A stretch of 14,415 nucleotides of DNA, taken from the NCBI RefSeq assembly GCF_006345805.1, contig NW_021825728.1, forward strand, positions 1 through 14,415, in the 5' to 3' direction. The translations under genes were made by a program, and so were the position numbers. Positions 1-14,415 of this stretch are shown in pieces. The notes beneath the pieces are model-generated. The model saw nothing but the letters and a program-made list of their open reading frames with translations. It had not been told where the DNA came from and searched no databases. Source of the stretch: Octopus sinensis. Lineage: Eukaryota. Position 1 is the stretch's first letter, and every line of letters starts with the position of its first letter.

Positions 1-307
1 CCATAGATTGAGTGGAAAGATGGGTGATACGCTGGAGCCAAAGGGCAGCTGTGTTTGCGACAACAAAGTAGTCCCTTGTTTGACGTAATCCCTATATTTA
101 CAGGCTGTTCCATTATCCACCGCCTGGTAACCTACCGAATAGAAGATACTCACTCAAGATTTACACATTCACACACACATTCATAGCCATCCTTAAATCG
201 CTAGTCGAGCGAGTATGTCTTGGCAACATATCTAAAGCTTTTACTAATTGCTTCAGGTGCCTATGTATTTCCGAGCAGACATAGATAGACTTTTAGCGGT
301 AATACAT

Positions 308-358
308 CCGAAAGGATGAAAGGTAAAGTCAACTTCGGCGGAATTTGAAGTCAGAACG
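308..358 (-). mobile_element. Truncated fragment of an octopus-type tRNA-derived SINE
   Basis: CCGAAAGGATGAAAGGTAAAGTCAACTTCGGCGGAATTTGAAGTCAGAACG. The minus strand reads cgttctgacttcaaattccgccg, a B-box-like TTCAAATTCC. Family recognised from memory of octopus repeats, not from a search. Confidence 0.6.
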
Positions 359-1104
359 ATTAATGCAATATAATACAAATCCTTTAATCTGAAATAATAC
401 TCAGGAAGAGTCGAACCCACTCTGTACAATCTAGGGTACATTTCAGTTAAACTGTAACAGACAGATCAGCTAAATCTTAAGCTTAAAGTATTTTGTAGAA
501 TTATAACTAATGTCTTTTTATTTCTAAAAATGTATCGGGTTTATTTTACCAATGACGTCTTTAATAAAAATACGTTTCATAATACCGGACTATTTTACAT
601 GTTTCATTTACGTAATTTCAGAGTCAAGCAATTTAAGCGGATCTCGTAATTATCTGCAGTTTAATTAGTCTAACAATATCACTTTTAATGGTAAACGTAA
701 TATAGACATGCAATAATTAACTGTCATTCTGTTACTAAATCAGCTAATATCAATATAACTGTAACAATAAATATCTTAAATTTAGGAAATGATGTTGCGA
801 AATGCGGCTTCCGGGGCGCAGCCCAGCAAGCAAATTTTATTAAAGTGGAAGAAGTAGGCATACCCAGCCGGATTATTTGCGTAATGTGGTTCTTCGTTGT
901 CAGGTTCATTTCGACTCCTCACATGGCATCATTACACCGATGTCTTCGTTCACAAATCCACACTGTATGCAGTTCTTCTTCGTCTGACCTCACACTAACT
1001 GTTCACATCACCCAACTCTCATCTCTAACTCTTCACATCGCCCAACTCTTATCCGATTTTTAATTACCCACAAGGGTCTAACATAGAGGGACAATAAACA
1101 TATG

Positions 1105-1535
1105 AAAGAACAGAAGAGTAGTAAGAAGAGAAGAGGAAGGAGAAGGAGGAGAAGAAGACGAAGAAGAAGAAGAAGGAAAATGAGGAAGAGCAGGACGATA
1201 GGATGTGGAAGAAGAGAAAGAAAAACAAGAATGGTAGGACAAGAACAACATCAAATCAACAACATTAAAACAATAAGTAGAGGAAGTAGAAGAAAAAGAA
1301 AACGGAGACGAAGAATATGTAGAAGGAGATAATAACTAATATGATGAAAGGAAGGAAACGAAAATGACGAAAAGAAGAAGAAGAAAAAGAGGAGGAGTAA
1401 GAAGAAGAAGAGCAAGGAAGTGCAGGAGGAGGTAATGAAGATGAAGTGGATGTAGAAGTTAAAGAAGAAGAGAGAGAGGTGAAAAATAAGTAGGAGGAGA
1501 AAAGAAGAAGAAAGGAAGAAGAATATGTCCAAGAA
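1105..1535. repeat. Purine-rich (GAA/GAG) low-complexity tract, unit 1
   Basis: Almost all A/G on the + strand; homologous to 5710-6130 and 10713-11192. Confidence 0.9.
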
Positions 1536-1851
1536 GAATTTTATAAATGAGTTTTATAAATGACGTAGTTCTAAATGTACAAATGCCATCGGTATTGAAG
1601 CATGTTATTTAGCGTAAACACCAGACATAATATCCATACCGAATGATAGACACAGGTGAATAGGGATTTGTATGTTTATAGTGATGATGAACATGGTGTT
1701 GATGCTGATGATGATGGTGGTGAAGTTTCTCTTGTCGATGATGATGAACATATAATACCGTGTGAAAGGAAAATGACGAGAGTGAGCGAAATTACAAACA
1801 TGGAAATATATCGGCAATGATATACTATAAGTGAAGATTGATTTAACTTAC

Positions 1852-1923
1852 AGCTCATATAAATTGGTCAAATATTGGAAGGTTTCTGGTTGGATTTCAG
1901 TAAAATTATTACCGCCAAAACTC
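1852..1923 (-). CDS. Internal 72-nt exon encoding one typical LRR: (L)SFGGNNFTEIQPETFQYLTNLYE(L)
   Basis: Minus strand: tctatattgcag|G AGT TTT GGC GGT AAT AAT TTT ACT GAA ATC CAA CCA GAA ACC TTC CAA TAT TTG ACC AAT TTA TAT GAG CT|gtaagt. It has a canonical acceptor, a perfect GTAAGT donor, phase 2 at both ends and no stop, and it fits LxxLxLxxNxLxxLPxxxFxxLxx. Confidence 0.8.
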
Positions 1924-2263
1924 CTGCAATATAGAATTGAGTTAATTTCAAACTTTATGGAACAGGCAAGTGGCAGTACATAACATATTTCGAGTAAGGA
2001 AATAAACTATGGAAATCACGAAGAGTTGATTACGGTTCCGTTGAAATTGATAATAACGATGATGATGATGTTCAAGTGGGTGCAACTAACTGCGGTAGGA
2101 TATGGTAATGAATAAAGTTGGTGATAAAGCTAACTTATTGCGGTAGTGTGTGGTAATGAATGAAGTTAATGATAAAGGTAATGATGAGCCTGAAAATATT
2201 GAAAACTGAGAGAAAGAAAAGTGTTGCGGATAATAATGTCGGTAATGATGATGGGAACGAAGA

Positions 2264-2947
2264 AATTGATAATGAATGAGAAGTAAATGAAAATCGGTAA
2301 GAAGGAGAATAAGAAAAAGTAGAAGAAAAATATGAAGATGACGAAAAAGCAGACGAAATGGAATATAAATAAGAGCGATTAGAAATGAAGAACGACGAAG
2401 AAGAAGAAAAAGAAGAAAAAGTAGAGCAGGAAGATACGAAGTGGAAGAAAGAAAGAAAAAGAAGACAATTAGCACAAAATCAACAACATTAAAAACAATA
2501 ATTAGAGGAAGTAGAAGAAGTAAACGGAGAGAAAGAATATGCAGATGGAGAAGATAACTAAAATGATGAAACGAAGAAAAGGAAAATGATGAAAAGAAGA
2601 AGAAGACGATGACAGATGCAAAGTAGAAGATAAAAAAATAGAAATGAATAAGAGTGGAAAAAATATGAGTGTGAAGATAGTGCAAAAGAAAAATTAGAAG
2701 AAGAAGAAGAAGAAGAAGAAGAAGAAGAATAAGAAGAAAGAAGAAGAAGAAGAAAAGAGGAAGAAGAAAAAGAAGAAAAAGAGAAAAAGAAGAAGAAGGA
2801 AAAGAAGAAGAACAAGAAGAAGAACAAGAAGAAGAAGAAGTAAAAAAAATAATAAGAAGAAGAAGAACAAGTAGAGGAAGAAAAAGAAGAAGAACCAGAA
2901 GAAGAAGAGGAGGCAGAAGAAGAAAAGAAGAACAAAAACAAGGAGGA
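2264..2947. repeat. Purine-rich low-complexity tract including a perfect (GAA)11 at 2697-2729 and an older diverged copy of the unit purine block at about 2390-2605
   Basis: Direct reading. Motifs AGAGCAGGA (2423) and AATCAACAACATTAAAA (2478) also occur at 1187 and 1254. Confidence 0.85.
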
Positions 2948-2984
2948 AATAATAATAACAATAATAATAATAATAGCAATAATA
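2948..2984. repeat. Imperfect (AAT)n microsatellite
   Basis: aataataataacaataataataataatagcaataata. Confidence 0.9.
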
Positions 2985-4895
2985 GTTTGGGCCACAACCG
3001 ATTGTGCCCTTTGACTATCCCCGCCAGAATCGATGCCTGATGAAGAAATAATTATAGTTATAATTATTTGCATTATTCGTTAGTTTCATAAAATCTATGT
3101 TAGCTAAGTCTAAAAGCGTTAGCGGTAATACATTTCGGAAACTATACAGAAGTCCCTTTGTCTAGCTTCGTATCTTTGTCATCATTGGCTAATTGATGAC
3201 TTTCTCACTGAGACTGTCATATTGTTTCCCACGGCTTTGCCTGTAACCATAGATTGAGGGGAAGATGGGTGATACGCTGAGCCAAAGGGCAGCTGTGTTT
3301 GCGCCAACAAAGTAGTCCCATATTTGACGTAATCCCTATATTTACATGCTGTTCCATTATCCACCGCCTTGTAACCTACCGAATAGAAGATACTCACTCA
3401 AGATTTACACATTCGCACACACATTCATAGCCATCCTTAAATCGCGAGTGGAGCGAGTATGTCTTGGCAACATATCTAAAGCTTTTACTAATTGCTTCAG
3501 GTGCCTATGTATTTCCGAGCAGACATAGATAGATTTTTATATCTCCGACCCTAACCCTAACCCAGCTGTCGCTTCTAACACTTGACTGGTACACATTTAC
3601 AGCTGGGTAGACTGGATAAATCCTGAAGAACTTCCCAAACACCTTGCTCACTTAAAGAAATGAACCAATCACATTATGATCGTGCAGCGACATGCTAATC
3701 ACTGTATCACATCTTTCACACATACTGAGGTACTACAAGTAGAAACCGATACCAACAGCTCAAATGCAGCCCATAGCAAGTTTCCCCTGTCATCAACAAT
3801 TCACTGGATCCACGCTCAAATCATATCCAGTGATATGGTAGTTTTATCGGTCAAAACACCGGATTTAATCTATTGGCTGAAGCTAAAATCACAGAGATAG
3901 GAACTGATTGCAGAAAATGATAGAATATCATAAATGTCTGACAAGAAATTCAAAGTTATCTCTTGAATAAAGTCCAACATCCTTTCACACAAAAACATCT
4001 AAACATCTAAGGATTCTGGCAGCCATAATGGATTCTCATCTCTTTTGATCCTGAAGGAAGTCACTTTTGAAGTAGAACATCACTATAGGAGAAAGTAGAT
4101 CCCGTGTATATCTAGGACTGAATTTAAAAGACAATTTTTTTTCTTTTTAGAACCAGAAAATATTTCAATCCTAACAACTCCCACTTTTTGACGCTCAAGT
4201 AACCAAAGTAAGACCACTCTTTTTATTAACATTCCTTCAGTAATATTAACCGCTATGTTTAGTTCTTCATCCTCAGAACATCGGATTCTGGAATGTCCTC
4301 CATGTTCTCGTCTTCTTTCCGGTGGGAATTTATCTGTAACAATTTAAACGGAGCATTACCATCATCACCCCCACCAATATCGCACAACCAGCGACATTAA
4401 TGAGCTCAACTCCTTCTTCAAAACGCAGAAAGTAAAAGCAAGTGGGATTTGAACTTAAAATGGAAAGAGCTAGAAAATGTCCATACGAGACCCAGTCCGA
4501 TATCCCTACACTTTGTCTAGTCCACTGGCCTCTTTAAGTACGCAAAAAGCCGTAAGATAAGGATGTCCTCGGCTAGATTTAAAGTTAGAATACCGAATGC
4601 CAGATTAAATACCACAAGGTGTCATTCAAGTCGATGAGCTGCAGGTTCGGTCAATTTTTGACTAAATTATGATTTAAAATTTCTAAATAGTATATATCGT
4701 ATATTCACCATCTGCATATATACCGATTTCTATTTTATTCAGACAATCCCAAATGTGTAGAGAAGCAAGTGAATTCGCTTGAATCGATCGAATATAGTAT
4801 TGGAATATTTTATTTAAACTGGAAACTTCAAGTATTTAATGCCATATAACTTTTTCTACTGTAGGCAAAATACCAGATATTTTGGTGTAAGGAGA

Positions 4896-4994
4896 GTCGA
4901 TTAGATCGACCCTAGTATGCAACTGTTAATTAATTTATAGACCCCGAAAGGATGAAGGGCAAAGTCGACTTCGGCGGAATTTGAAGTAAGAACG
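4896..4994 (-). mobile_element. Fragment of an octopus-type tRNA-derived SINE
   Basis: GTCGATTAGATCGACCCTAGTATGCAACTG...GACCCCGAAAGGATGAAGGGCAAAGTCGACTTCGGCGGAATTTGAAGTAAGAACG, with a GTCGA-n5-TCGAC hairpin and a B-box-like motif on the minus strand. Recognised from memory of octopus repeats. Confidence 0.65.
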
Positions 4995-5709
4995 ATTAAT
5001 GCAATATAACACAAATCCTTTAATCTGAAATAATACTCAGGAAGAGTCGAACCCACTCTGTGCAATCTAGGGTACTTTTCAGTTGAACTGTAACAGAGAG
5101 ATCAGCTAAATCTTAAGCTTAAAGAAATTTGTAGAATTATAACTAATGTGTTTTTATATCTAAAAGTTATCGGGTTTATGATATCAACCTAAATTTTACC
5201 GATGACGTCTTTAATAAAAATAAGTTTCATAATACCGGACTATTTTACATGTTTCATTTACGTAATTTCATAGTCAGGCAATTTAAGAGAATCTCGTAAT
5301 TATCTGCAGTTTAATTAGTCTAACAATATCACTTTTAATTGTAAACGTAATATAGACATGCAATAATTAACTGTCATTCTGTTACTAAATCAGGGGGGGG
5401 GGGCGCGCCCAGCAAGCCAAATTGATTAAAGTGGAAGAAGTAGGCATACCCAGCCGGATTATTTGCGTAATGTGGTTCTTCGTTGCCAGGTTCATTTCGA
5501 CTCCTCACATGGCATCATTACACCGATGTCTTCGTTAACAAATCCACACCGTATGCAGTTCTTCGTCGTCTGACCTCACACCAACTATTCACATCACCCA
5601 CCTCTCATCTCTAACTCTTCCCATCGCCCAACGCTTATCGGATTTTTAATTACCCACAAGGGTCTAACATAGAGGGACAATACGCATAATTTGGGGACAA
5701 TTAACATAT

Positions 5710-6130
5710 GAAAAAACAGAAGAAGAAGTAGAAAAAGAAGAAGAAGAAGAAGAAGAAGAAGAAGAAGAAGAAGGAAAATGAGGAAGAGCAGGACGATAAG
5801 ATGTAGAAGAAGAGAAAGAAAAACAAGAATGGTAGGACAAAAACAACATCAAATCAACAACATTAAAACAATACGTAGAGGAAGTAGAAGAAGAAAACGG
5901 AGACGAAGAATATGTAGAAGGAGATAATAACTAATATGATGAAATGAAGGAAACGAAGATGACGAAAAGAAGACGAAGAAAAAGAGGAGGAGTAAGAAGG
6001 AGAATAGCAAGGAAGAGGTGGAGGAGGTAATGAAGATGAAGTGGAAGTAGAGGTTAAAGAAGAAGCGAAAGAGGTGAAGAATAAGTAGGAGAAGAAAAGA
6101 AGAAGAAAGGAACAAGAATAAGTCCAAGAA
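5710..6130. repeat. Purine-rich tract of unit 2, with a perfect (GAA)12 at 5737-5772
   Basis: Direct reading; homologous to 1105-1535. Confidence 0.9.
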
Positions 6131-6446
6131 GAATTTTATAAATGAATTTTATAAATGACGTAGTTCTAAATGTACAAATGCCATCGGTATTGAAGCATGT
6201 TATTTGGCGTAAACACCAGACATAATATCCATACCGAATGATAGACACAGGTGAATAGGGATTTGTATGTTTATAGTGATGATGAACATGGTGTTGATGC
6301 TGATGATGTTGGTGGTGAAGTTTCTCTTGTCGATGATGATGAACATACAATACCGTGTGAAAGGAAAATGACGAGAGTGAGCGAAATTACAAACATGGAA
6401 ATATATCGTCAATGATATACTATAAATGAAGATTGATTTAACTTAC

Positions 6447-6518
6447 AGACTTTTTAAATTGGTCAAATATTGGAAGGTTTCTGGTTTGATTTCAGTGAGA
6501 TTATTACCCCACAATTCC
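6447..6518 (-). CDS. Internal 72-nt exon encoding one typical LRR: (L)ELWGNNLTEIKPETFQYLTNLKS(L)
   Basis: Minus strand: ttttatgttccag|G GAA TTG TGG GGT AAT AAT CTC ACT GAA ATC AAA CCA GAA ACC TTC CAA TAT TTG ACC AAT TTA AAA AGT CT|gtaagt. Splice sites are canonical, phase is 2/2, and it splices in frame to 1852-1923 giving ...LTNLKSLSFGGNNFTEIQP... Confidence 0.85.
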
Positions 6519-6843
6519 CTGGAACATAAAATTGATTTAAGATGAAACTTTATGGAACATGTTTTTGGAAGTATAAACAAAAAAACGAGTGAGGAATTAA
6601 ACTATGGAAATCATGAAGAGTTGATTACGGTTCTGTTGAAATTGATAATAACGATGATGATGATGTTCAAGTGGGTGCAACTAACTGCGGTTGTCTATGG
6701 TAATGAATAAAGTTGATGATGAACCTGACAATGTTGACAGCTGAGAGAAAGAATAGTGTTGCGGAGAATAGTCTCGGTAATGATGATGGGAACGAAGAAT
6801 GTTTCGGGGACCACTACCCTGGGATGATCATGAAGCAAGCAAG

Positions 6844-7132
6844 CGTGTGTTTGTGCACGGACGTGTGTATGTAAGCATGTGTGTATGTATGTGTTTCTGT
6901 AAGCGTGTGTGTGTTAACTCAATAGTTGAACATGAAGAACGAAGAATATTACATCTTCATAATTTATTTGTTGAGGCATTTTCTTCATATTACATTCATT
7001 GGTTAATCAGCCCAAGATTTCCTCAGGGTGCTAAAAAGTATCTGCTCGGATTTCAAATCCCTATTTCATTACGTTACATATGTGTATGTGTGTGGCTGTG
7101 TGTACATATATGTATGTAAATGCCTATGTATA
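6844..7132. repeat. Two imperfect (TG/TATG)n stretches (about 6844-6915 and 7076-7132)
   Basis: gcgtgtgtttgtgcacggacgtgtgtatgt... and atatgtgtatgtgtgtggctgtgtgtacatatatgtatg. Confidence 0.75.
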
Positions 7133-7134
7133 TA

Positions 7135-8029
7135 CGAGGGGATACACAGAAGTAACCGTAAATGTTCTCTGTAAAACAAACCCGTTGTAGTTCAGGTTTC
7201 CATCGCTAAACTCCACTTGATGCGACTGTCAGGCATCAGTCAGCCAACCGGCGTTATCCGGTAGTGTTGTACTGCCGCGTAGTTCGTCTTTGTTTTGACG
7301 TATTTCTGCTCAGTTCGTATGTTTTTTGCAATGGCTGGAACGAAGGAACATTGTGCTTCTGTGAAATTCTGTTTACTGCTGCTGAAAACTGCAGATGAAA
7401 CAATTGTCATGCATCCCATCACAAGGATGATGCAATGGACAAAGCACAAGTTTATGAATGGTTTTCACGATTTAGCAATGGTCACTTGTCGCGTGAAAAC
7501 CAACCTCATTCATGACAACCATCAATCAACCACCCAAACATCATGAAAATTAATGATCTGATCCTTCAGGACCGTCACTGAGCATTTGATGAAATTGTTG
7601 AAATGTCGATTTTGTCCTGGAGCTCCTGCCAATGAATTTTCTGCGAGGAATTGTGAATGAAAAGCGTTCCAGCAAAATATATGCCTCGTTTGCTCACGTA
7701 ATGTCATAAATAGTCACGGCTGAATGCGTGTCGTGAGCTAGAAGAAGGGTTATGAGGTAATCCGAAAGTTTTTTCGAAGGTCTTCACTGGTGACGAAAGC
7801 TGGTACTACGGAATTTGAAGATGTTGAAGTAAGGAAAGAAATCGATGGGGGCGTTAAAAAGCATCACTTCGGAATAGGTCCAACACGGATTCCAGTAGCT
7901 GAAAAGGCGACTGGAACGATGCATTGATTAAAATGGAGAATACTTTGAACACAATAAAAGTGTAAATATGTAAATCTTATTGAATAATATAATATTGCAA
8001 AATTACTGTTTCTTTTGGGCAGCCCCTCG
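7135..8029 (+). mobile_element. Defective, internally deleted mariner (Tc1/mariner) element with both TIRs
   Basis: The left end is TA|CGAGGGGATACACAGAAGTAACCGTAA. The reverse complement of the right end is CGAGGGGCTGCCCAAAAGAAACAGTAA (21/27 identical). The left flank is TA; the right flank is AA (mutated TSD). A transposase remnant lies inside. Confidence 0.9.
7331..7973 (+). pseudogene. Mariner transposase pseudogene
   Basis: With frameshifts and stops it reads MAGTKEHCASVKFCLLLLKTADETIVM / KDDAMDKAQVYEWFSRFSNGHLSRENQPHS*QPS...MKSVPAKYMPRLLT...KVFTGDESWYYG / FEDVEV / ALKSITSE*VQHGFQ*LKRRLERCID*NGEYFE. This shows the N-terminal HTH region, the linker, the first catalytic Asp (TGDESW) and the C-terminal CIxxxGEYFE motif. 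The second and third catalytic Asp region is deleted at about 7812. Confidence 0.9.
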
Positions 8030-10712
8030 AATGTATGTACACACAAGCGGCTAAGGCCGAGCTTCCCTGGGATTATTAATACCTAAAATAGATATTATCT
8101 CATCATTTCCTTATATTTTGGGTAAACTGTTTTATAAAAGATGCCAAGATACCGGAAATCCTCAGTTTGTCTGTGAATGTTAATTCACTGAGAATTGTAA
8201 ATACACAGAACATAAGAAAAAAAACTAAAATACAGTTTACCTTTATATTCATATTTTCTGTGGTAAATGTTTTAAGAACATACGCTACATTTTTCAAAAT
8301 ATCTTCAAAGTAATTTCTTTTCTAATAAGTAAATTTTACAATGACTAACGTAGTGCTTGAAGTATACAATGTTCTTATTTCGCCCTTGGTTGCAGACAAG
8401 TGGTGAAGATCCCACACTGGATATTTAGAATGTCGTCTGGCAAGCTAAGACTTCATAGATTTTATCTTACAGAATATGGCTTATTGTACTCTGTACCTTA
8501 TATATCTTCACCTTTGCAACTATACTCCACATAAGGTATTTTACGCCCACAACCCTTTCATTACTAGATTTATTTTGATTGAGAACTGATGTTAGGCTTG
8601 CTAATCATCATCTCGTAGGGAAGATTTGATAATTGTGTTGTTATCACTTTTCATTAGTGAATTCATGAGTTGTTTTGTCTTTGCTGGTCCATTTCGTTAA
8701 ACCTAGTTTTATTACACTTTCATGCTATTATATATATATAATTATAGACATATCGTTAAATGTCGTCACTAATTACAATAATATTTATATATATCTGATG
8801 CTACCGATTCACTTATTAATGATAATTTAGAGCTCAGGCATTCAAAGTTGATATTATTTCTGTGTGCTTGCATTTTTCTAATGATGAGTTTTAAGGTTGG
8901 CGCTGTTGATTATTCTTTTGAATTATGGGCCATATTGTGGGCCACAACCGATTGTGCCCTTTGTTTATTTCCGCAAGAATCGATGCGGGATGAAGAAATA
9001 TTTATAGTTATAAGTCATTTGCATTATTCGGTAGCTTCATAACATCTATGTTAACTAAGTCTAAAAGCGTTAGCGGTAATACACTTCGGAAACTACATAG
9101 AAGTCCCTTTGTCTAGCTTGGTATCATTGACACCATTGGACAATGAATGACTTTCTCACTGAGACTACAGCGCTGTCATATTGTAGACTGAGTGGAAGAT
9201 GGGTGATACGCTGAGCCAAAGGGCAGCAGTGTTTGCGCCAACAAAGTATTTCCTTATTTGACGTAATCCCTATATTTACAGGCTGTTCCATTGTCAACCG
9301 CCTCGTAACCTACCGAATAGTAGATTCTCACTCAAGATTTACACATTCGCACATACATATTCATAGCCATCCTTAATGCGCGAGTGGAGCGAGTATGTCT
9401 TGGCAACATATCTAATGCTTTTACTAATTGCTTCAGGTGCCTATGTATTTCCGAGCTGACATAGATACGCTTTTATATCTCCAATCCTAAACCTAACCCA
9501 GCTGTCGCATCCAATACTTGACTGGTACACATTTACAGCTGCGTAGACTGGATCAATCCCTATCAACGTCCCAAACACCGAGCTTAGTTCAAGAACTGAA
9601 TCAATCACATTATGATCGTGGAGCGACATGCTAATCACTGTGTCATATCTTTCACACACACTGAGGTACTACAAGTAGAAACTGATACCAATAGCTCAAA
9701 TGCAGCCCAAAACAATTTTCCCCTGTCATCAACAAGTCACTGGATCCACGCTCAAATCATATCCAGTGCTATGGCAGTTTTAACACTCAAAACATCTCAG
9801 CTCAGATGTAATCTACTGGCTGAGGCTAAAGTCACAGAGATGGGAAAATGATAGAATATCATAAAATGCCTGACAAGAAATTTAAAGTTGTCTCTTGAAT
9901 ATAGTCCAAAAGCTTTTCACACAAAAACATTTAAAAATCAAATGATTCTGGCAGCCATAAAGAATTCTCTTCTGTTTTCTTTTGATCCTGAAGGAAGTCA
10001 CTTTTGAAGTAGAACATCACTATAGCAGAAAGTAGATCCAGTGTATATCTAGGACGGAATTTATAAGACAATGTTTTTTTCTTTTTAGAATCAGAAAATA
10101 TTTCAATCCTAACAACTCCCACATTTTGACGCTCAAGTAACCAAAGTAAGACCACTCTTTTTATTAACATTCCTTCAGTAATATTAACCGCTATGTTTAG
10201 TTCTTCATCCTCAGAACGTCAGCTTCTGGAATGTCCTCCATGTCCTCGTCTTCTTTCCGGCGGGAATTTATCTGTAACAATTTAAACGGATCATTACCAT
10301 CATCACCCCCACCAATATCGCACAACCAGCGACATTAATGAGCACAACTCCTTCAAAACGCAGAAAGTAAAAAGAAGTGGGATTTGAACTTAAAATGGAA
10401 AGAGCTAGAAAATGTCCATACGAGACCCAGTCCCACATCCCTACCCTCTGTCTAGTCCACTGGCCTCTTCAAGTACGCAAAAAGCCGTAAGATAAGGATG
10501 TCCTCGGCTAGATTTAAAGTCATTACACCGTTGCCTTCGTTGACAAATCCACACTGTATGCAGTTCTTCGTCGTCTGACCTCACACCAACTGTTCACATC
10601 ACCCAACTCTCATCTCTAACTCTTCCCATCGCCAACTCTTATCCGATTTTTAATTACCCACAAGGGTCTAACATAGAGGGACAATACGCACATTTGGGGA
10701 CAATTAATATAT

Positions 10713-11192
10713 GAAAGAACAGAAGAAGAAGACGAAGAAGAAGAAGAAGAAGAAGAAGAAGAAGGAAAATGAGGAAGAGCAGGATGAAAAGATGTAGAAG
10801 AAGAGAAAGAAAAACAAGAATGGTAGGACAAAACCAACATCAAATCAACAACATTAACACAATAAGTAGAGGAAGTAGAAGAAGAAAATGGAGACGAAGA
10901 ATATGTAGATGGAGATAATAACTAATACGATGAAACGAAGGAAACGAAAATGACGAAAAGAAGAAGATGAAGAAAAAGATGAGGAGTAAGAAGAAGAAGA
11001 CGAAGAAAAAGAGGAGGAGTGAGAAAAAGAAGACGAAGAAAAAGAGGGGGAGTAAGAAGAAGAAGAGCAAGGAAGTGGAGGAGGAGGTAATGAAGCTGAA
11101 GTGGAAGTAGAAGTTAAAGAAGAAGAGGAAGGAGGTGAAAAATAAGTAGGAGAAGATAAGAAGAAGAAAGGAAAAAGAATTAGTACAAGAAG
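10713..11192. repeat. Purine-rich tract of unit 3, with a perfect (GAA)10 at 10734-10763
   Basis: Direct reading; homologous to 5710-6130. Confidence 0.9.
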
Positions 11193-11196
11193 ACTT

Positions 11197-11738
11197 TCGA
11201 AATGAACCTGGCAACGAAGAACCACATTACGCAAATAATCCGGCCAGGTATGCCTACTTCCTCCACTATAATCAAATTGGATTGCTGGGCTGCCCCCCGG
11301 GTACCGTAATTCGCAACATCATTTCCTAAATTTAAGATGCTTATTGTTACAGTTATATTGATATTAGCTGATTTAGTAACAGAATGACAGTTAATTATTG
11401 CATGTCTATATTACGTTTACAATTAAAAGTGATATTGTTAGACTAATTAAACTGCAGATAATTACGAGATTCTCTTAAATTGCCTGACTATGAAATTACG
11501 TAAATGAAACATGTAAAATAGTCCGGTATTATGAAACTTATTTTTATTAAAGACGTCATCGGTAATATTTAGATTGATATCATAAACCCGATACGTTTTT
11601 AGAAATAAAAACACATTAGTTATAATTCTACAAATTTCTTTAAGCTTAAGATTTAGCTGATCTGTCTGTTGCAGTTCAACTGAAAAGTACCCTAGATTGT
11701 ACAGAGTGGGTTCGACTCTTCCTGAGTATTATTTCAGA
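11197..11738 (-). repeat. Inverted copy (about 540 bp) of the block at about 389-913 and 5024-5500
   Basis: TCGAAATGAACCTGGCAACGAAG at 11197 is the reverse complement of 5478-5500. CCTGAGTATTATTTCAGA ending at 11738 is the reverse complement of 5024-5041. Confidence 0.93.
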
Positions 11739-12398
11739 AATTCTGTTTACTGCTGCTGAAAACTGCAGATGAAACAATTTTCATGCATCCAATCACAAGG
11801 ATGATGCAATGGGCAAAGCACAAGTTTATGAATGGTTTTCACGATTTAGGAGAGTCCACTTGTCGCTTGAAAACCAAGTCATTCATGACAACCGTCGACC
11901 TCCCAAACATCATGAAAATTCATGATCTGATCGTGGAGGACCGTCACTGAGCAATTGATGAACTTGTTGACATTTCGGTTTTGCCCTGGAGCTCCTGCCA
12001 ATGAATTTTCTGCGAGGAATTGTGAATGAAAAGCGTTCCAGCAAAATATATGCCTCGTTTGCTCACGGAATATCAAAAACAGTCACGGCTGAATGCGTGT
12101 CGTGAGCTAGAAGAACCGTTATGAGGTAATCCTAAAGTTTTTCCGAAGGTCATCACTGGTTTCGAAAGCTGGTGCTACGGAATTTGAAGATGTTGAAGTG
12201 AGGAAAGAAATCGATGGGGGCGTTAAAGAGCATCACTTCGGAATAGGTCCAACACTGATTCCAGCAGCTGAAAAGGCGCCTGCAACGATGCATTGATTAA
12301 AATGGAGAATACTTTGAACACAATAAAAGTGTAAATATGTAAAACTTATTGAATAATATAATATTGCAAAATTACTGTTTCTTTTGGGCAGCCCCTCG
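11737..12398 (+). mobile_element. 5'-truncated duplicate of the defective mariner (right TIR only)
   Basis: Starts at GAAATTCTGTTTACTGC (equivalent to 7363). It reads VITGFESWCYG, has the same internal deletion and shared stop codons, and ends in CTTTTGGGCAGCCCCTCG. Confidence 0.9.
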
Positions 12399-13355
12399 AA
12401 TGTATGTACACACAAGCGGCTAAGGCCGAGCTTCCCTGGGATTATTAATACCTAAAATAGATATTATCTCATCATTTCCTTATTTTTTGGGTAAACTGTT
12501 GTTTAAAAGATGCCAAGATACCGAAAATCCTCAGTTTGTCTGTGAATGTTAATTCACTGAGAATTGTAAATACACAGAACATAAGAAAATACTAAAATAC
12601 ACTTTACTTTTATATTTATATTTTCTGTGGTAAATGTTTTAAGAACATACGCTACATTTTTCAAAATATCTTCAAAGTAATTTCTTTTCTAATAAGTAAA
12701 TTTTACAATGACTAACGTAGTGCTTGAAGTATACAATGTTCTTATTTCGCCCTTGGTTGCAGACAAGTGGTGAAGATCCCACACTGGATATTTAGAATGT
12801 CGGCTGGCAAGCTAAAACTTCATAGTGTTTATCTTACAGAATATGGCTTATTGTACTCTGTACCTTATATATCTTCACCTTTGCAACTATACTCCACATA
12901 ACAAGGTGTTCTACACCCACAACCCTTTAATTACTAGAATTATTTTGATTGTGAAATGATGTTAGGCCTGCTAATCATCATCTCGTGGGAAGATTTGATA
13001 ATTGTGTTTTTATCACTTTTCATTACTGAATTCATGAGTTGTCTTTCTTTATTGGTCCATTTCGTTATACCTAGTTTTATTACGCTTTCATGCTGTTATA
13101 TATCTATAATTATAGACATATCGTTATATGTCGTCACTAATTACAATAATAATTATATATAACTGATGCTAACGTTTCACATATTAACGAATATTTGGAG
13201 CTCAGGCATTCACACTTGATATTATTTCTGTGTAATTGCATTTTTGTAATGATGAGCTATAAGGTTGGCGCTGTTAGTCATTCTTTTGAATGATGGGCCA
13301 TAGTTTGGGCCACACCGATTGAGCCCTTTGTTTTTTCCCGCAAGAATCGATGTAT

Positions 13356-13723
13356 CAGGGGTCCTTAACCTGAGTCTTGTTGTAACAACACAAAATATAA
13401 AAGGCAAATGTTAAAATGTTAAAATATAGGCAAATGTTAAAGCTACAATTCAGAAATAAGTGAGGGTTCTGAGGGAGATGAAGAGGGGTCACCAATTACA
13501 GAAATGGTGAGTGGCGCTAAAATAGTAGAATAAGAAAACTAAGGGTATTATGCGATAATTTTGCATTTTTTTCATAAACTTTTCATTTTTTGACCATGTT
13601 CTCGTTAAGAAGATAACATATATAATTAGAGAAAATCCTACTTTTTCGCAAGCGGTCGCGCTCCTTTCAGAGTTATTGACGCACTCTGCCCCAGGGAGCG
13701 CGCTCCTAGTTTAAGAACCACTG
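13356..13723. mobile_element. hAT (Charlie-like) non-autonomous element / MITE, 368 bp
   Basis: The left end CAGGGGTCCTTAACCT and the reverse complement of the right end CAGTGGTTCTTAAACT match at 13/16. These resemble hAT-Charlie TIRs (CAGTGGTTCTCAA). Subterminal AAATGTTAA occurs three times at about 13406-13440. The right flank ATCTCGAG resembles the NTCTAGAN target consensus. No matching TSD on the left. Confidence 0.65.
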
Positions 13724-13940
13724 ATCTCGAGGTAAACAACGTACATGATATAGACACTGAATTACACACTAATTTTTATACACTCCCATTAACTCATCCA
13801 TACACTGAGACAGGTATTTATATATAAACACAGGTATGCATTAACTATGCCTCCTCAAGTGTCACACTGATATATATTTATATACCATCTGTCAGAAATG
13901 CAACCACACTCACAGTCACAATCATTCGCAAACATCCCTT

Positions 13941-13941
<1 letters not shown>

Positions 13942-14000
<59 letters not shown>
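13942..14000. repeat. Perfect (AG)29 microsatellite
   Basis: Direct reading. Confidence 0.98.
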
Positions 14001-14002
<2 letters not shown>

Positions 14003-14415
14003 CTTTAGATATAGAGGGCTGAGGGTGCTTAAAAGGATGGATGAGAATATATTAAATAGTTAGAAACCTATCGGCAATGAAATCCTGTGAACAAGACTTT
14101 AAATTAAACAACATTAAAACAATTACATTAACAGGATTACTGAAAATATTATGATAAGGAGAACGATGGCAACAACAACAACAAGTAAAGACTATGTTGA
14201 AGCATTAGTGTATGAATAAAATTGTTCTAAATATACAAGCACAAAGAATATTCAAAGATGTTATTTAACGTCGACCTAGATGTATTCATCGTACATAATA
14301 TACACACCGTATTACAAACACACGTGTTAATACGCTGCCATACACTCATTCATACACACAAACATATTCTTATGATAACGATGCGGATTCGCAGCATTTG
14401 TTGTGATGATGGATA

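Follow-up and report, generated by a model that had tools for sequence, protein, structure and literature searches.

A stretch of 14,415 nucleotides (nt) from Octopus sinensis (contig NW_021825728.1, positions 1 to 14,415; hereafter the window) carries on its minus strand two 72-nt segments, each of which encodes one 24-residue leucine-rich repeat (LRR). We consider it fairly probable (roughly 0.6) that these segments are neighbouring internal exons, duplicated and then diversified, of a minus-strand, multi-exon gene whose product has an extracellular LRR domain. Each exon would act as a plug-in structural module that supplies one full repeat, and a block of exon plus intron, duplicated in tandem not long ago so that the exons lie 4595 nt apart, would have added one repeat without disturbing the frame, presumably by unequal crossover rather than by replication slippage or some other route. 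Codons for the x positions of the concave face would have diverged afterwards, through selection or through short-tract conversion from other paralogous exons, with the scaffold residues, the frame and the splice signals retained throughout. Both exons would be spliced and expressed as members of one gene, the remainder of which would lie beyond the window.

The upstream exon of the pair occupies positions 6447-6518 and the downstream exon positions 1852-1923. With its borders, the upstream exon begins and ends as tgttccag/GGAATTGTGG...AAAAAGTCT/gtaagt (complete: tgttccag/GGAATTGTGGGGTAATAATCTCACTGAAATCAAACCAGAAACCTTCCAATATTTGACCAATTTAAAAAGTCT/gtaagt) and the downstream exon as attgcag/GAGTTTTGGC...TATGAGCT/gtaagt (complete: attgcag/GAGTTTTGGCGGTAATAATTTTACTGAAATCCAACCAGAAACCTTCCAATATTTGACCAATTTATATGAGCT/gtaagt), slashes marking the exon borders. 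The gtaagt donors are perfect in both copies and both acceptors are pyrimidine-rich. Each exon has one open frame (frame 1), in which one base completes the previous codon and two start the next, that is, phase 2 on both sides, and the encoded peptides are (L)ELWGNNLTEIKPETFQYLTNLKS(L) for 6447-6518 and (L)SFGGNNFTEIQPETFQYLTNLYE(L) for 1852-1923. Judged by these signals, the 4523-nt gap between them (1924-6446, minus strand), which opens with GT at 6446-6445 and closes with AG at 1925-1924, would be an intron; it consists of AAG/CTT-rich low-complexity DNA and of the repeat segments that we label S, A, D and B below. At the predicted junction, AAAAGTCT/GAGTTTTGG, a leucine codon is rebuilt (CT/G) and the frame is kept, and the spliced product would contain ...ELWGNNLTEIKPETFQYLTNLKS-L-SFGGNNFTEIQPETFQYLTNLYE... 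in a single frame. Since G is the first base of each exon and CT its last two, any two of them, once joined, would rebuild the leucine codon and stay in frame. The exon border cuts the repeat between positions 4 and 5 of LxxLxLxxNxL, so that each exon starts at position 5 and ends at position 4. Both segments lie in stop-to-stop genomic open reading frames (ORFs) of 52 codons each (1851-2006 and 6446-6601), with a TAA across the donor. A longer exon drawn from this 52-codon open frame was considered and rejected, as the pyrimidine tract, the AG and the start of the LRR match coincide at the border of the 72-nt segment. An earlier note on this DNA, which did not give the strand, had claimed two 72-nt phase-2 exons, each with one 24-residue LRR at the same position in its unit, that are 4523 nt apart and join in frame, and the exon boundaries, the open frame, the Pfam results and a self-BLAST of the window bear out both points.

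The LRR identity of the encoded peptides is clear once the two segments are joined. The joined 49 residues pass the gathering cutoffs of three Pfam families, LRR_8 with 47.4 bits (E 1.6e-12; cutoff 27), LRR_4 with 40.3 bits (cutoff 27) and LRR_1 with 30.2 bits (cutoff 20.6). The unspliced ORFs reach 21 and 12.9 bits against LRR_8, below its cutoff, and their match is confined to residues 30-52, which is the exon part; the match of 21 bits belongs to the ORF that holds exon 6447-6518. Because the LRR_8 match starts at the predicted acceptor, the 28 codons upstream of it would be intron and the 72-nt boundaries right. The consensus LxxLxLxxNxL followed by xxIxPxxFxxLxxL is matched by L-K-S-L/E-L-W-G-N-N-L-T-E-I-K-P-E-T-F-Q-Y-L-T-N and by L-Y-E-L, S-F-G-G-N-N-F... 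The window holds two such repeats, and these only after the predicted splicing; no cap-like Cys-rich ORF was found in it. Searched with phmmer against PDB sequences, the top matches were LRR ectodomains only, led by LRRC15 (89 bits, E 3.8e-25) and followed by IGFALS (74), TLR3 (69), LGR5 (63.5), LRIG1 (54) and LGR4 (50). By its sequence, the repeat appears to be of the "typical" 24-residue class of animal extracellular proteins. Since LRRC15, IGFALS and TLR3 outrank LGR5, the similarity is generic and the parent family is not nameable from it; the previous statement that the parent gene could not be named from the window stands, as no orthologue or transcript turned up in the searches of protein clusters and metagenome contigs described below.

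AT-rich open frames could resemble an LRR and happen to end in AG and GT by chance, and this reading draws on the sub-threshold Pfam scores of the single unspliced ORFs and on the fact that open runs of 52 codons are no rarity in the window. The E values reached by the joined peptide in Pfam and in the PDB search speak strongly against it, as does an LRR match that starts exactly at the acceptor. In addition, AG-(72 nt)-GTRAG segments that are open in phase 2 and fit an LRR template occur twice in the window and in 0 of 300 Markov resamplings. We therefore give coincidence a negligible probability, and the Pfam, PDB and resampling results effectively refute it. As the two exons are a duplicated pair, the template scan counts as one independent event, yet it is a solid one. 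The Pfam matches, the canonical splice signals, the symmetric phase and the acceptor-aligned match make a convincing case that the two segments would be LRR-coding exons.

Self-comparison of the window (self-BLAST) showed three tandem units that are heavily rearranged. The exon-bearing module extends over 308-2134 in unit I, where it is made up of segment B (308-743) and the exon-bearing segment C (813-2134), and over 4944-6729 in unit II, where B corresponds to 4944-5393 (91.8% identity) and C to 5400-6729 (90.8% identity over 1343 columns); the exons lie at the same offset in this duplicated block. Segment A is present three times (1-295, 3247-3539 and 9184-9475), a composite segment S-A-D twice (2982-4585 and 8932-10520, 89% identity), with its D portion (3540-4585) absent from unit I, and segment E twice (7363-8985 and 11737-13352). 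Unit II holds all segments and unit I is without D and E. The rearranged unit III (9184-11738) comprises A, D, part of C (10520-11197) and an inverted copy (11197-11738): of C it retains just the equivalent of 929-1541, and an inverted copy of 388-914 stands in place of the counterpart of 6137-7362. As this replacement includes the exon-bearing stretch, unit III has no exon. The inverted copy is 0.54 kb long, is 92-98% identical to 388-914 and 5024-5500, and lies exactly where the exon-bearing stretch is missing. Judging from this map, an inversion or fold-back plus a deletion appears to have removed the LRR exon from unit III.

The "tandem units" proposed in the earlier note thus hold in the sense of a duplicated exon-plus-intron module, but not in the sense of equal repeats, as the array is a mosaic with large insertions and deletions rather than one of equal period, and its units measure 3246 and 5937 nt between the A segments. 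The further proposal, that the array in its entirety forms the inside of a single LRR gene, was not borne out, since unit III is without an exon and the window contains no further LRR exon. For the pair of exons itself, growth by duplication of a module would be the straightforward reading, and it matches published systems of 72-nt phase-2 LRR exons (PMC3341825, PMC11378527).

The new and most informative result is the contrast in divergence between the introns and the exon ends. The two modules are ~91% identical overall and 95-97% identical in clean intron flanks, where the copies differ by 3-5% (4/152 just downstream of the exon, 6/120 farther upstream). The exons differ at 14 of 72 positions, against 10 of 272 in the far flanks (Fisher p = 3e-5). 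Divergence is concentrated in a hot spot at 1852-2000 of the minus strand (partner 6447-6595), which takes in both exon ends and 77 nt of the intron upstream of the exon. At the exon ends about half of the positions (~50%) differ between the copies, 6/12 at the 5' end and 5/9 at the 3' end, and the intron directly upstream of the exon differs at 22/77. The exon centre, with 3/51 differences, is less divergent than this adjacent intron patch (p = 0.0013). All 14 nucleotide differences fall within 7 replaced codons, and the other 16 codons are identical. Four of the replaced codons encode LRR positions 2, 3, 5 and 7, which are the x positions of LxxLxLxx that face the solvent on the concave side; the others encode positions 6 and 11, each with a conservative change from Leu to Phe, and position 15 (Lys to Gln).

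The retention of scaffold, frame and splice signals alongside the replacement of ligand-facing residues is the behaviour of coding sequence and not of junk, and it suggests that the segments are real or recently real coding sequence that was diversified or patched by gene conversion. Two readings fit these data. In the first, a young duplication was followed by fast change in the codons of the binding face. In the second, a gene-conversion tract of ~150 nt from a more diverged paralogous exon overwrote one of the copies, in which case further such exons would exist elsewhere.

The same data bear on the possibility that the exons are fossils, that is, a piece of an LRR gene (one exon plus intron) swept into a repeat-rich, transposon-ridden block, a macrosatellite-like segmental duplication amplified in tandem. 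They would no longer belong to an expressed gene and would look intact simply because the duplication is young. At the flank rate of 3-5%, neutral decay would give ~2-3 differences per 72 nt where 14 were observed, the differences cluster in concave-face codons, the scaffold and the central 51 nt have changed less than the intron patch beside the exon, and both copies retain their perfect gtaagt donors and pyrimidine-rich acceptors. On the other hand, repeats make up most of the surroundings, with a dead mariner-like element and an inverted duplication in addition to AAG tracts, unit III is already without its exon, the window has no other coding feature and the cluster searches found no homologous protein or transcript. 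Keeping the frame and the AG and GT after so many changes would also be unremarkable, at an estimated probability of roughly 0.5 each. We regard fossil exons as unlikely, but as the main rival explanation.

Several observations weigh against a pair of diversified exons in a larger gene, among them some from the divergence analysis itself. The NG86 method gave dN 0.25 and dS 0.16 (nonsynonymous and synonymous divergence) over 23 codons, which leaves almost no statistical power, and the hot spot includes 77 nt of intron, which means that the signal is not confined to coding sequence. The loss of the exon-bearing stretch from unit III means that at least part of the array is in decay. The visible exons are two and are copies of one another, hence a single line of evidence for their being exons at all. 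No start, stop, signal peptide, LRR cap, transmembrane segment or other domain was found in the window. The joined 49-residue peptide had no match, and thus no orthologue, in a word-indexed search of ~5.8 billion protein clusters. An exhaustive HMMER search of the 52-residue genomic ORF against 1.84 billion representatives returned 45 matches, all to metagenomic or microbial LRR proteins of ~50% identity with uninformative names; none of them is an orthologue, including the best, a metagenomic LRR protein of 362 residues with 50% identity.

Other searches for the rest of the gene and for its relatives gave little. Neither tblastn with both peptides, nor a six-frame search with an LRR regular expression, nor word-7 blastn with the exon and its flanks found a third LRR exon or a relic of one on either strand of the window. 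A weak blastn match at 14063-14118 was rejected as a candidate, as it shares a 12-mer only. The 12 stop-free segments scanned against Pfam contained no gene end and no LDLa, seven-transmembrane (7TM) or TIR-type domain, modules that had been suggested as possible companions of the repeats, and the ten of them that lie outside the LRR exons gave only a sub-threshold match to the helix-turn-helix (HTH) domain of Mos1. The 7.9 kb upstream of exon 6447-6518 on the minus strand showed no recognisable coding feature of the gene. An exact-pattern scan of JGI metagenome contigs with the conserved exon core and one local repeat found nothing. In the 362-residue metagenomic protein, a 24-residue repeat occurs seven times in nearly the same form (...NKITEIHPDTFK.LTQL...), and the C-terminus is rich in Cys and RING-like. 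On the whole, the interpretation offered in the earlier note is partly supported by these results.

Exons of this kind have been described in several gene families. In the passage of PMC11378527 that cites Koo 1991 and Kobe & Deisenhofer 1994, the gonadotrophin receptor genes are given as having LRR exons of similar size, all in phase 2, and their LRR domain is presumed to have expanded from a prototypic exon by duplication. The glycoprotein-hormone and LGR-type receptor genes (LHR, FSHR, LGR4-6, RXFP1/2) resemble the window in having one LRR of ~24 residues per exon, exons of similar size and phase-2 introns, and the ectodomains of LGR5 and LGR4 are among the good PDB matches (63.5 and 50 bits). 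The proposed likeness to LGR and RXFP receptors holds for exon size and phase, although ~72-nt phase-2 LRR exons, which are found here, are not specific to that family (PMC11378527, PMC3341825). It does not hold for the sequence, which is no closer to these receptors than to LRRC15, IGFALS, TLR3 or LRIG1, the first three of which score higher than LGR5, and the window has no coding sequence for a 7TM, hinge or LDLa module. In Slit- and LRIG-type animal genes individual ectodomain LRRs lie on separate 72-bp exons, and LRIG1 is a good PDB match (54 bits); unlike these genes, the window has no coding sequence for EGF, Ig or LRR-cap modules. Young LRR genes of Tetrahymena are built of tandem arrays of 90-bp exons with an extreme phase-2 bias, which are attributed to ectopic recombination and linked to repeat-rich regions (PMC6564038). 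They share with the window the tandem LRR exons of equal length in phase 2, but they belong to a ciliate with short introns and have exons of 90 bp and repeats of 30 residues, against exons of 72 nt and an intron of 4.5 kb here.

A further parallel in exon format is with the brown-alga ROCO genes (LRR-ROC-COR; Ectocarpus, Saccharina), which have phase-2 exons of exactly 72 bp with one LRR each, exon shuffling and tandem gain and loss, positive selection on a few sites, and variable sites on the binding face (PMC3341825, PMC11378527). A 72-bp phase-2 exon that codes for one LRR is what the window has as well. The algal type I exon, however, has the register GxxPxxLxxxxxLxxLxLxxNxLx (PMC3341825), whereas the exon border in the window falls inside LxxL/xLxxNxL and does not precede GxxP. 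In type, the repeat is like those of animal extracellular proteins, no ROC-COR is seen in the window, and its DNA, with 36% GC and a mariner-like element, looks metazoan. The exons of the window work like the algal system, yet they are not members of the algal family.

With such systems in mind, the two exons could be part of a diversifying cassette array, whose exons are used combinatorially (by skipping or mutually exclusive splicing) or as conversion donors to produce receptor diversity in a manner comparable to Dscam, the brown-alga ROCO genes or the lamprey VLRs. The symmetric phase and the identical length mean that any subset or order of exons stays in frame, the variation is focused on the predicted ligand-binding positions, and the sharp divergent patch in otherwise 97%-identical introns looks as though a short tract had been converted from another copy. 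In the brown-alga ROCO genes, shuffled LRR exons of 72 bp are also reported to be alternatively spliced (PMC11378527). Just two exons are seen, however, and ordinary constitutive LRR exons of LGR-type genes have the same formal properties, and we consider a cassette array quite improbable. In lamprey VLR genes non-spliced partial LRR cassettes are copied into an incomplete germline gene, whereas the segments of the window have a canonical acceptor and donor and exactly one full repeat each; these splice sites argue against non-spliced cassettes of the VLR type. There is likewise only a slim chance that the window belongs to an invertebrate receptor locus in which interchangeable one-repeat LRR exons were amplified by unequal recombination, with a binding face that selection and short-tract conversion diversified and possibly with combinatorial use through alternative splicing. 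If this were true, it would be the animal counterpart of the brown-alga ROCO system.

Apart from the exons, the window is repeat-rich and has a GC content of 36%, and no long ORF, tRNA or Rfam match was found in its 14.4 kb, a composition that fits eukaryotic intronic or intergenic DNA. Segment D with a unique tail makes up 1.4 kb at 3540-4943 (also 9476-10520) that is present in units II and III and absent from unit I. At the corresponding site unit I has a 12-nt filler (296-307); no clear target-site duplication was seen there, and the difference may be an insertion or a deletion. Two units of a telomere-like CCCTAA motif lie inside segment D (3549-3562). At 5394-5406 a run of ~13 G stands in place of ~60 nt that both unit I (744-812) and the inverted copy (~11300-11370) contain, and it may be either a real deletion or a sequencing or assembly artefact.

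An internally deleted mariner-like transposon lies at 7129-8035, with 33-nt terminal inverted repeats (7129-7161 and 8003-8035) that are 76% complementary and with stop-ridden remnants of a transposase (...DDAMDKAQVYEWFSRF..., ...TGDESW...). A second copy, truncated at its 5' end, runs from 11737 to ~12405 and gives the sub-threshold Mos1 match (HTH_48, 17.7 bits). Long purine-rich tracts derived from (AAG)n were found at 1100-1540, 2290-2980, 5700-6130 and 10700-11190, with higher-order periods of 23 nt and 33 nt. The tract at 2290-2980 is an older copy with 70-80% identity to that at 1100-1540, so that the unit may have gone through a previous internal duplication. Positions 13942-14000 hold a perfect (AG)29 microsatellite.

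The principle behind the proposed explanation is textbook knowledge, as symmetric phase-2 LRR exons of 72 nt and exon duplication are already known. If the two segments are indeed neighbouring exons of one gene that were duplicated and then diversified, the window would offer a snapshot of an LRR domain in the course of growth, with introns that are still 95-97% identical and ligand-facing codons that are already rewritten. It would thereby be a small but useful case for the birth of a repeat at the level of the exon and for the fast diversification of a binding surface, and it might point to a receptor gene that is missing from the annotation of the source genome.

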